A stretch of DNA of 33,000 bases, taken from contig OZ286473.1 in the NCBI GenBank assembly GCA_965644265.1, forward strand, positions 30,814,001 to 30,847,000, in the 5' to 3' direction. Source of the stretch: Glycera tridactyla. Lineage: Eukaryota. The translations under genes were made by a program, and so were the position numbers. Position 1 is the stretch's first letter; every line of letters starts with the position of its first letter. Shown here piece after piece: positions 1,820-25,059 of this stretch. The notes beneath the pieces are model-generated. The model searched no databases and was not told where the DNA came from. It saw nothing but the letters and a program-made list of their open reading frames with translations.

Positions 1820-2540
1820 TGAGTTCAAAACTGGAAGTGAATGAGTGAGAAGGAGAGAGGAATGTGAGAGCTTGAGTGAGCAAAAGAAAAGGAGTCAGTG
1901 AGAACAGAGAAAGTGAGAGAAAGTGGTGAATATGAGTCAAAGAGATAAGGAGGGCAGATATGGTTACAGAAAAGCAGAGATAAAAAGGCACAAAAGTGGA
2001 TGTGTGGAAAGTTGCAGCTGATTCAGCATAGTGCGTAGATCGGTGGATGGCAGCTATTGCTTTATTTAGTGGCATGACCTGACATGACATGACCTATTAG
2101 TTTGCATCATAGATGAGAAGGTTGCACCATATTTTAACCAACAGTCATTATAGTAATTGTGCCTCATGCAAAGACTGACGGTCACTGATCGAAGTACTAT
2201 TAGCATATTTTCTCTGCTTTGTCTTGCAGCACATATATGTCTGACCAGGTCTGCCTGTGTCTGCTTCATGTCCGTATTTATCTATATGCTTGTCCAAATG
2301 TTCATTAATTTGTTTGTCTCTCTTAGATGTGTCCATATACCAGGGCTTGTGGGTGAGTCTGCCTTTTCACATCTACATAGCCATTGATTGTATGTCTATA
2401 TGATATCCTATCGATCATGTGTTGATATCTATTTCCGACAGCATGCATTCTTCGTCTTTCAACCTTCCAATGGCAGAGATATATCAAAATGGAAAGCAAC
2501 AACAGTTTCACGTTGTTTTGTATAGTTTGAACCATATTCA
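1820..2540 (-). pseudogene. Decayed TRIM-like (B-box/coiled-coil) relic; inverted diverged paralog of 6570-7600
   Basis: Its reverse complement aligns by eye with 7050-7600 (gcatgaggcacaatta.tataatgactgttggttaaaa.atggtgcaac; gcaatagctgccatccac). Fragmentary frames read KRDKQINEHLDKHIDK and QADLVRHICAARQSRENMLIVL, which are coiled-coil-like. Many stops and frameshifts. Confidence 0.45.
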
Positions 2541-3036
2541 CCTAATAGGTTATACACTTACTTCTCTACATACGTAGTTACTCCCTCACTCACTCACTCA
2601 CTCACTGGCTCACCCACCAACTCACTGACTTTCAGCACAACCACCAAAACACCCACGCACAGAGTTGATTAACAATTAATACATCCACTCATTTACTCAC
2701 TGACTCACTCAAAACAATCCATGAACAGTTTGACACTGGCTGATTGAATTTGAATAATGGACTGACTGTAACTGATTGTCTAACCTACTGGCCTTTTCAT
2801 ACATTATTGGGGATTCAGGCTCCGATCATTCTTATACTTGAAGTTGTTGAGGCGCAAGAATCGCCGAATCTCCCTCCCACTACTACAACTTTATCCCACA
2901 TGACAATCAGCTACATAGTAGGAACATCCGATGTACAAAAACAAATGAAACATGTCCAATTTAGTGAGTGCAAACTCATTCACAATCATGTGTGCATGGT
3001 TGGGTATGCTCACTGTATATCCTGTTATCAGTAGGA

Positions 3037-3480
3037 TTTGTTTGTTTGTTTCTTTGTTTGTTTGAGGTTTAACGGCATGTATCAACCCACAGGATTATGT
3101 ATGCCATGTGTTCCTGGTCAATGAAAGCTAGTTGTTCTCTCCCCTGCAGACATCACTCTCACAAACCCTGGACACAAGATGATGGGGAACCTAAAAGGTT
3201 GTCAAGTGGAAGTAGCTGACAGTTCAGACACACCTCTACCTACTCTCATGAACAAAGTGAATCTGATGATGGCATATCTAACTATGTAACTGGCTGGAAG
3301 CTAACACTCAAGCCTGATAGCAATGTTTTTTTTTTGCAAAGCGCAGCACTTGACACTAGGAAAAGCATTAGATTCGGAGAATACTCGACCAATGTGTTCA
3401 ATCACAAACTGTGAACTTCAAGTCAGTTTTACAATCATGGTATGTCCTATGCTTGCAGTACAATGCCATCACACAACCTA
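3037..3480 (-). mobile_element. Interspersed repeat family C, copy 1 (probable SINE or non-LTR 3' end with (AAAC)n tail on the minus strand)
   Basis: Begins with (GTTT)n-gaggtttaacggcatgtatc on the + strand. Homologous copies lie at about 5443, 15358, 23780, 25752, 28381 and, inverted, 31340-31725. Confidence 0.55.
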
Positions 3481-23104: not shown

Positions 23105-23262
23105 TCGATGATGATGATGATGATGATGATGATAAAGGTGATAATAATGATGATGATGATAATCACAATTATGATGAGGATAATAGAAATGATAAAAAAT
23201 CATAATAACAAGAATGATTATAATAATGATAATAATAATAATAATAATAATAATAATAGTAG
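23105..23262. repeat. (GAT)n/(AAT)n compound microsatellite
   Basis: Direct reading. Confidence 0.95.
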
Positions 23263-24187
23263 TAACACCATCTCACCTACTCTAGATCCTATCTATAAAA
23301 CTCACTTCGTGCAACTGTGTGGTATCCAATAAATGGGCCAGAACAGCAACTCTATAGAAGATCATATGACTCTACCCACAAGAATGATATTGTGATTGTA
23401 ATAAATTTTATCTTCATATTAGGAAAAAGGAACCCACCAAAGTCACCCGCTACTTCAATATCCCCAACCACAGCCAAGAGGGTCTGACAGTGGAAGCCAT
23501 AACTTTGGCCTCTAGAAATGTGAACACCAGACTACAACAGGAAGGAGAATTTATTGTAACTAAACACAAACAAATTGATTGGACTATAATGGACTGATTA
23601 CACTTCGTCTTGACAGTGACAGTGATGATTTTCCGGTATCCACAATAATACCATCGAAATCTTTGACTCAATCATGGCTGACAGACCCAATGCTGCTACC
23701 AGATCCGTCTCCATCACCATCAGAAACATCTGAACCCAGAATTGACCCATTTGATAAGTGCGAGTCGATGACTGTTCAGACACACCTATATACTCATAAC
23801 GAATAGCTAATCATTCTAATAATGGCATATCAAACTAAGTATAACTGGCTGAAGCTGATACTCAAACATGACAGAAATGTTTTTTGCCGATCCGAATCTT
23901 GATATCAATGAGGTGTGCATCGGGTTCTGAGAATTCCTAAACCAATGTGTTCATCTGTAAAATTTCAATTTGAATCAATACTCCATAATTGCAGTACAAT
24001 GCAATCCCAAGAGATTTCGAGAATACCTTACCAATGTGTTCACCTGTTAAATGTCAATTCGAATCAGTACGCTATGATTGCAGTACAATGCGATCCCAAG
24101 AGATTCAGAGAATAGTAGCAAATAGATTGTTCTTGGTTCCAAGATGATTCATGTTGAAATCATTTTCACTTACTTTGGAACAATGTT

Positions 24188-24715
24188 TTGAAACAGTCAA
24201 GACGTTTCGACCACTCTACAAGCAGTCTTGATCACTTGATGGGTCAGTGGTCACAGCGTATTTACCGGTCACATGGTGTCAATATGTTCCAAAAACCCAG
24301 CAACAAACTCCGATCCATTCTGGTCAACCCCAAAGATCAAACACAGAAGGGGAAAAAATGTGGACTCATATACCAAATAACCTGCGACCAGAACCCCAAC
24401 CACACATATATCGGGGAAACCAAAAGATCTCTCGCTACCAGATTTAAAGAGCACACAAACTTGGATGCCCCAACCGCTATTGGTGAACACTGCCAACAAA
24501 CCGGCCACAGTATCTCTCTAGAAAACACCACCATCCTATCTAGAGAACAGGACTGGACTCTACGTAAAGTCAAGGAGGCCATCCACATAAAGCAGAGAAG
24601 CCCATCGATGAACAGGGACCAAGGGTACGCGCTCCCCCCAGTCTACAACCTGCTCCTTCTACCTGAGCGGCGAGCTGTGACCACTGACCCATCAAGTGAT
24701 CAAGACTGCTTGTAG
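24188..24715 (+). CDS. GIY-YIG endonuclease domain of the Penelope-like element (C-terminal fragment; the first ~23 codons come from the inverted repeat)
   Basis: KPSNKLRSILVNPKD...CGLIYQITC...YIGETKRSLATRFKEH...AIGEHC...GH...EAIHI...NRDQGY.LPPVY is the typical PLE endonuclease. No internal stops. RT is absent, so it is probably not a functional gene. Confidence 0.85.
   Translation: MKQSRRFDHSTSSLDHLMGQWSQRIYRSHGVNMFQKPSNKLRSILVNPKDQTQKGKKCGLIYQITCDQNPNHTYIGETKRSLATRFKEHTNLDAPTAIGEHCQQTGHSISLENTTILSREQDWTLRKVKEAIHIKQRSPSMNRDQGYALPPVYNLLLLPERRAVTTDPSSDQDCL
24197..24239 (-). ncRNA. Minimal type I hammerhead ribozyme, variant core (inverted copy)
   Basis: Exact reverse complement of 24692-24734. 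Confidence 0.7.
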
Positions 24716-24734
24716 AGTGGTCGAAACGTCTTGA
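24692..24734 (+). ncRNA. Minimal type I hammerhead ribozyme with G3:C8 variant core
   Basis: UCAA-GUGAUCA-A-GACUGC-UUGUAGA-GUGGUC-GAAA-C-GUC-UUGA. Stem I is UCAA/UUGA, stem II has 6 bp (two GU), the GAAA core is intact, stem III is a loopless AC/GU, and the cleavage triplet is GUC. It sits at the pLTR position where PLEs carry HHRs. Confidence 0.75.
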
Positions 24735-25059
24735 CTGTTTCAAAACATTGTTCCAAAGTAAGTGAAAATGATTTCAACATTCAGAGAATACCTTACCAAT
24801 GTGTTCACTTGTAAAATGTCAATTTGAATCAGTACGCTATGATTGCAGTGCAATGCGATCTCAATAGATTCAGAGAATACCTAACCAATGTGTTCACCTG
24901 TAATATGTCGATTTGAATCAGTACTTTATGATTACAGTACAATGCGATCCCAAGGAATGAGTACAACTCAATAAAGACGCTCCAGCGATGAGGATAGGCT
25001 CAGATCCATTGAATCATGGTCCTCATCTCAAGCAAATCTGTAAAGGCAATTTGCTTTGG

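Follow-up and report, generated by a model that had tools for sequence, protein, structure and literature searches.

A naturally flipped G3:C8 core pair in the predicted minimal hammerhead of a PLE subclade

The motif at positions 24692-24734 (forward strand) of a 33,000-nucleotide stretch of Glycera tridactyla DNA (the whole stretch analysed, hereafter the window) is a real minimal hammerhead motif of a Penelope-like element (PLE), a retrotransposon, in which the core pair C3-G8 is naturally flipped to G3-C8; cleavage is predicted. The flipped pair marks a whole PLE subclade rather than being private to the family represented in the window, and it probably reflects one old switch from C3:G8 to G3:C8 that has been retained since. 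Position 8 of the hammerhead serves as the general acid through its 2'-OH, and the C3-G8 pair is regarded as near-invariant. A natural lineage with an inverted pair, both long-lived and recently amplified, amounts to an evolutionary test of base identity against pairing, and it bears on what PLE hammerheads are retained for, be it cleavage or another role. Should the G3:C8 form prove catalytic, the subclade would represent the first hammerhead lineage with a natural G3-C8 pair, and it would expose a blind spot of every survey based on CUGANGA. The variant shows that pipelines for ribozyme and PLE annotation find too few hammerheads when their catalytic boxes are fixed.

Architecture and Folding of the Motif

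The layout, obtained by sequence reading, pattern search and RNAfold, is that of a minimal type-I hammerhead (architecture as in PMC4209133), all parts lying on the forward strand. Stem I consists of a 5' strand UCAA (24692-24695) and a 3' strand UUGA (24731-24734). The core GUGAUCA occupies 24696-24702 and is followed by a single unpaired A (24703) between A9 and G10.1 and by helix II (24704-24722), in which RNAfold draws 8 bp closing a GUA loop. GAAA (24723-24726) and CGU (24727-24729) come next, and the palindrome ACGU that spans them (24726-24729) forms a loopless stem III. C17 of the GUC site is at 24730, with predicted cleavage at 24730|24731. Set against C3-U4-G5-A6-N7-G8-A9, five core positions agree, while 3 and 8 are exchanged (G and C) and the Watson-Crick pairing between them is satisfied as G-C. 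G12-A13-A14, the A15.1-U16.1 pair and a non-G base at 17 are all present (GAAA-CGU-C, 24723-24730). The earlier note had claimed a GUGAUCA core with only positions 3 and 8 exchanged and the remainder intact, and both the sequence reading and RNAfold confirm this. Its placement of the core inside the last codons of the PLE frame is equally correct: in the window frame the ORF ends S-D-Q-D-C-L and then TAG, overlapping the hammerhead core, and the stop (24713-24715) lies within or adjoining loop II.

RNAfold recovers stem I and the 8-bp helix II, with a z-score (-1.1) that is unremarkable because the motif is so small. When two copies of the motif are folded together, RNAcofold returns a domain-swapped duplex; the hammerhead dimer itself is pseudoknotted and lies beyond ViennaRNA scoring. 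The loose pattern TGATNA N{8,36} GAAACGTC matches twice in the window against 0.03 matches expected. An Rfam scan of the window, at the gathering cut-off and at E<=10, matched no hammerhead model; since Rfam likewise fails on four canonical min-HHR controls, its negative is uninformative about the G3:C8 form.

Combinations of Positions 3 and 8 in the Genome

The generic descriptor [3]TGAN[8]ANG-N8-22-CGAAASSTC was run genome-wide for each 3/8 combination, with the reversed pattern as control. G3/C8 yields 873 matches (control 25) and canonical C3/G8 297 (control 16), which makes the flipped form about three times commoner than the canonical one in this genome under the same descriptor. The unpaired combinations are at or near background counts, with 36 matches for G3/G8 (control 23) and 25 for C3/C8 (control 12). 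The G3/C8 matches span several subfamilies with differing helix II sequences, and several hundred copies in this genome carry G3:C8.

All W3/W8 combinations together give 132 matches (control 116). They include a few heterogeneous U3:A8 motifs (L082, L095, L096) and one PLE family of about 20 copies with an unpaired U3/U8 core, UUGAAUA (GAAAGCUC type). Its copies are genuine PLE 3' ends with a long open reading frame, and this family too has been amplified: copies L092-L094 (G000 C4:6033681-6034865, C7:35457009-35458193 and C11:11552754-11553938, respectively) are 91-96% alike, and the RT/EN frame of L092 is uninterrupted over about 350 aa.

Relatives in Other Assemblies and a Probable Single Switch

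The C-terminal 307 aa of a full-length copy of the family, L031, has 831 homologues at E <= 1e-5, many of them with RVT_1, GIY-YIG or HTH_animal, and the DNA of 11 of these homologues, drawn from other assemblies, was compared. G3:C8 and a complete core occur in all seven closest relatives (L039-L042 and L087-L089, six samples, 57-65% aa identity), in the form GUGANCA, extra A, GAAACGU and H at position 17. U4, G5, A6, A9, G12-A14 and A15.1-U16.1 are thus kept in 7/7 independently found relatives, which have U, C or A at position 7 and C, U or A, never G, at position 17. Four relatives at 50-57% identity (two from Dreissena, one from Mercenaria and one metagenome contig) have canonical 3/8, with CUGANGA downstream of the stop, and the core of one Dreissena copy is degraded. 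Canonical C3/G8 is also found in a paralogous PLE family of this genome (L034/L038), whose intact 845-aa ORF shares about 42% identity over 820 aa with the G3:C8 PLE. The place of the hammerhead within the element is the same as that of the canonical min-HHRs in sister PLE families.

Some further features of the relatives concern details of the motif. The ORF stop of the canonical sister family (L034:463-495 and 3070-3102; L038) is U4-G5-A6 of its own hammerhead core. In L041:1069-1118 and L042:995-1045, each from a sample of its own, an additional A separates helix II from G12, G10.1 stands opposite A, and the cleavage site is GUA. The C-terminal peptide 'HVT' was considered as a proxy for G3:C8 and rejected: the motif of L086 is canonical and lies downstream of the stop.

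In a maximum-likelihood tree of 13 C-terminal regions, a single branch separates the eight G3:C8 elements from the others (UFboot 89, SH-aLRT 95). The tree comprises 13 proteins, the degraded subfamily copies of this genome being left out as their ORFs are too broken. Because the sampled tree requires one switch only, the change is treated as a single event, and the argument is built on how long the flip has been retained rather than on covariation that recurs.

Helix Covariation and Overlap With the Coding Sequence

An alignment of 26 G3:C8 motifs (A1) contains 18 rows from this genome that were chosen by a core-fixing pattern, so that only the external relatives gauge core conservation without bias. 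Positions 3 and 8 are G-C in 26/26 of the aligned clade members. In the helices, 82% of cells pair in the named structure, compared with 22-43% when the partners are slid. Ten of the 12 helix pairs (helices I and II) have changed on both sides, a count to which no probability is attached since the 26 motifs are related; with the same caveat, none of 500 shuffles reaches the observed covariation score.

Members of the G3:C8 clade differ in how the motif relates to the reading frame. In L088 the stop precedes the core by 8 nt, in L089 it coincides with U4-G5-A6, and in the window copy, L039-L042 and L087 it falls in loop II. As the stop occurs in three places while the core is unchanged, coding cannot explain the conservation of the core, and we infer from these alignments that conservation reflects selection on the RNA rather than on codons. 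The earlier note had read the motif as a natural covariant selected under simultaneous coding constraint. The covariant itself is well supported by the relatives, the genome counts and the stem compensations, and the part concerning selection holds insofar as the motif persists across a diversified PLE subclade while stems I and II change in a compensatory way; the coding overlap, however, is no general constraint, given that the place of the stop varies.

Full-length Copies and Recent Activity of the Family

The elements of the family show the structural traits of PLEs: a pseudo-LTR or tandem structure, an inverted 5'-truncated arm, a variable tail and a target-site duplication. L031 is ordered as inverted arm, spacer, hammerhead (583-617), 48 nt, ATG (666), RT-EN frame, second hammerhead (3114-3148), short tail and a 13-bp target-site duplication. 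The two hammerheads are spaced 2,531 nt apart in two full-length copies, and the genomic 5' pseudo-LTR of L031 contains the complete, uncleaved motif. PF01541 passes in the PLE (24.9-25.4 bits against a cut-off of 22.6), and the match to PF00078 is weak (17.2 bits, under the curated cut-off of 29.6).

A first look at the 181-nt 3' end of the family gives about 2,000 candidates genome-wide, the best 40 of which are 98-100% identical. The exact family-specific pattern has 153 genome copies, and some family copies keep open RT-EN frames; together with the identity of the 3' ends, these observations suggest that the family was recently amplified. The earlier note had asked whether G3 and C8 co-occur among family copies or whether most copies are canonical or unpaired. 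All but one of the 153 are G3/C8, and within the family the co-occurrence represents identity by descent, not independent covariation.

Several peculiarities of the copies deserve mention in their own right. In L031 and L032 the RT-EN frame breaks in a run of nine C just upstream of YVDD (L031:2161-2180); the cause is a polymorphism of the homopolymer or else a mistake in the assembly. Frames broken by a frameshift entered the searches piece by piece. Among the copies compared at this poly-C run (L001, L004, L010, L026 and L090), those with seven C stay open as far as the TAG of loop II, and the open frame of L090 is 751 aa long. Some 20-80 nt past the cleavage site there is a conserved hairpin, GUUCCAAAG ... 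CUUGGAAC in its family form (window 24745-24780; L031:632-700; L039-L089). Its loop contains a GUAAGU-like 5'-splice-site consensus and in L031 also the start codon ATG 666. Genomic 3' ends fall inside this hairpin, just before GTAAGT in L031 and at 24780 in the window copy; the hairpin may mark the starts of reverse transcription or act as a translation control element. When public assembled contigs, none of them recorded as RNA, were compared with L031:380-3300 (2,921 letters), they yielded no usable ends; one 967-nt contig (run X5, for which the DNA or RNA kind is unrecorded) was seen to join L031 position 3102 to position 572 (2269-3102 + 572-704), that is, back by 2531. The junction indicates a tandem or circular PLE unit.

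The Insertion in the Window

The copy in the window (24116-24780) is a dead, 5'-truncated PLE 3' end. Its body (24258-24780, forward strand) holds the C-terminal part of the GIY-YIG endonuclease, the hammerhead and a 50-nt tail, as defined by PF01541 (25.4 bits) and by comparison with L031; the profile search places the GIY-YIG domain in a 175-aa frame of the window. Upstream of the body lies an inverted partial pseudo-LTR copy (24116-24257, reverse strand), identified by comparison with L031 and corresponding to the usual 5' inverted structure of PLEs (PMC8557442, Figure 2 legend); such inverted arms, like tails of variable length, are ordinary in these elements (PMC8557442). The arm and the 3' end form a perfect inverted repeat of 107 nt, 24151-24257 being 100% complementary to 24674-24780. 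Since the end of the PLE carries this inverted duplicate, the pattern search finds a second, identical G3:C8 motif on the minus strand (24235-24201), a segment of the inverted arm that runs from the core to C17. The insertion is flanked by 10-bp target-site duplications, TCAGAGAATA, on the left (24105-24114) and on the right (24781-24790), and it breaks an 89-bp tandem repeat into a left part (23925-24114) and a right part (24779-24953). A microsatellite block rich in GAT/ATA is located about 0.9 kb upstream of the insertion, at 23107-23258.

Because the copy is truncated and its inverted duplicate would lock the motif into a long hairpin, the locus in the window represents a fossil of this family rather than a working ribozyme site.

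Proposed Mechanism and Rival Explanations

We regard as likely the reading that this is a PLE min-HHR with a flipped pair, switched once in an ancestor and then kept as an RNA fold, probably for self-cleavage, under selection in the source copies. Two sense copies of the motif, separated by 2,531 nt when full-length elements are transcribed in tandem or by read-through, would pair through ACGU to give an extended stem III, as proposed for other PLE min-HHRs. The predicted cleavage after GUC would then release unit-length RNA; it would probably be slow and possibly aided by the element's protein. Such behavior has parallels, as cleavage by PLE min-HHRs requires a dimer or an extended stem III and is weak in vitro (PMC4209133). 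The more specific proposal, that a PLE subclade of aquatic invertebrates runs on a catalytically competent hammerhead with an inverted 3-8 pair and a pyrimidine at position 8, is a tentative prediction, somewhat less secure than this main reading. Compared with the canonical form, the balance between cleavage and ligation or the dependence on protein may be altered. G3 might also mispair with C17, a problem hinted at in the literature (PMC3884650), and this would count against an active G3:C8 form. The amplified family of about 20 copies with U3/U8, the single switch and the extra A before G12 in L041 and L042 were likewise weighed against the reading.

A hammerhead resemblance arising by chance within coding sequence is scarcely credible. 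The missing Rfam match would speak for it, but Rfam equally misses the canonical controls, and the two window matches against 0.03 expected, the 873 genome-wide matches against a control of 25 and the position of the motif, where sister PLE families hold canonical min-HHRs, all speak against it; genome counts, element position, the cores of the relatives and helix covariation together rule it out. It is also quite improbable that the flip inactivated the ribozyme and was tolerated, the motif persisting by descent and through its overlap with the ORF end rather than by selection on the RNA. Some PLE clades do seem able to dispense with hammerheads (PMC8557442), the codons S-D-Q-D of the window family coincide with the core, and the tree needs a single switch. 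Against such tolerance, G3:C8 and the full core persist at only 57-65% protein identity, lineages differ in whether the stop precedes the core, coincides with U4-G5-A6 or falls in loop II, and stems I and II show compensatory changes.

More weight, although still on the unlikely side, belongs to the possibility that the hammerhead-like fold, its 3-8 pair included, is retained for a purpose other than catalysis, G3:C8 then existing without cleavage in vivo; a candidate for this purpose is a recognition or assembly site for RT-EN near the 3' end of the template. The Anolis PLE lends it some plausibility: there cleavage depended on protein, target-primed insertion in vitro did not require it, and RNA-seq ends were absent at the hammerhead site (PMC11167929). 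An essential catalytic role is also called into question by the ready proliferation of PLE clades that lack hammerheads (PMC8557442). Within this genome, the entire uncleaved motif in the 5' pseudo-LTRs of L031 and the amplification of the U3/U8 family point in the same direction. On the other side, every position of the catalytic core (U4, G5, A6, A9, G12-A14 and A15.1-U16.1) is kept in 7/7 relatives, and a position 7 that is free together with a position 17 that is never G is the pattern expected under catalysis.

Comparison With Known Hammerheads

Minimal hammerheads of this kind were reportedly also the subject of work by Lunse, Weinberg and Breaker in 2017. The published PLE min-HHRs (Cervera and De la Pena, 2014, PMC4209133) have a helix II of 7-8 bp, a helix I of 4-5 bp, a base between 9 and 10.1, a G10.1-C11.1 pair and a palindromic 15.2-16.2 without loop 3, and pairs on opposite strands 100-700 bp apart are frequent. 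The motif described here has all of these traits, and it shares with the published ones the pseudo-LTR location, the type-I topology and the high copy number (PMC4209133). It differs in the box, which is GUGANCA instead of CUGANGA, and in the ORF, which enters the motif in this family. The warning of the earlier note that searches requiring CUGANGA would miss the variant is borne out, as such descriptors were used in PMC8557442 and the U3-A8 form needed a separate one in PMC4209133.

Natural U3-A8 covariants have been described (Perreault et al., 2011, PMC3088659), among them the Schistosoma Cercyon PLE with about 1,300 copies (PMC4209133). These hammerheads likewise show a compensatory 3-8 change, and the Schistosoma case is likewise a PLE. 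U3-A8 differs from the canonical pair by two transitions, whereas here the pair is inverted to G-C and a pyrimidine stands at position 8. A full-text literature search, exclusive of Lunse et al. (2017) and of the figures and supplements of PMC4209133, found no natural G3-C8 hammerhead. The natural form is apparently unpublished in that we found no report of it; natural U3-A8 and engineered G3-C8 have both been published.

Other counterparts are engineered. In the hammerhead of the Anolis Poseidon PLE, cleavage is lost with either single change, C3G or G8C, and regained in part when both are combined (PMC11167929), a biochemical precedent for the cleavage predicted here. Earlier C3G/G8C doubles are those of Martick and Scott (2006), as recounted in PMC11167929, and of Przybilski and Hammann (2007) and Nelson and Uhlenbeck (2008), as recounted in PMC3884650. 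The core change is identical to the one described here, but those molecules are laboratory constructs, whereas the G3:C8 form of the PLE subclade is natural, found across the clade and recently amplified.
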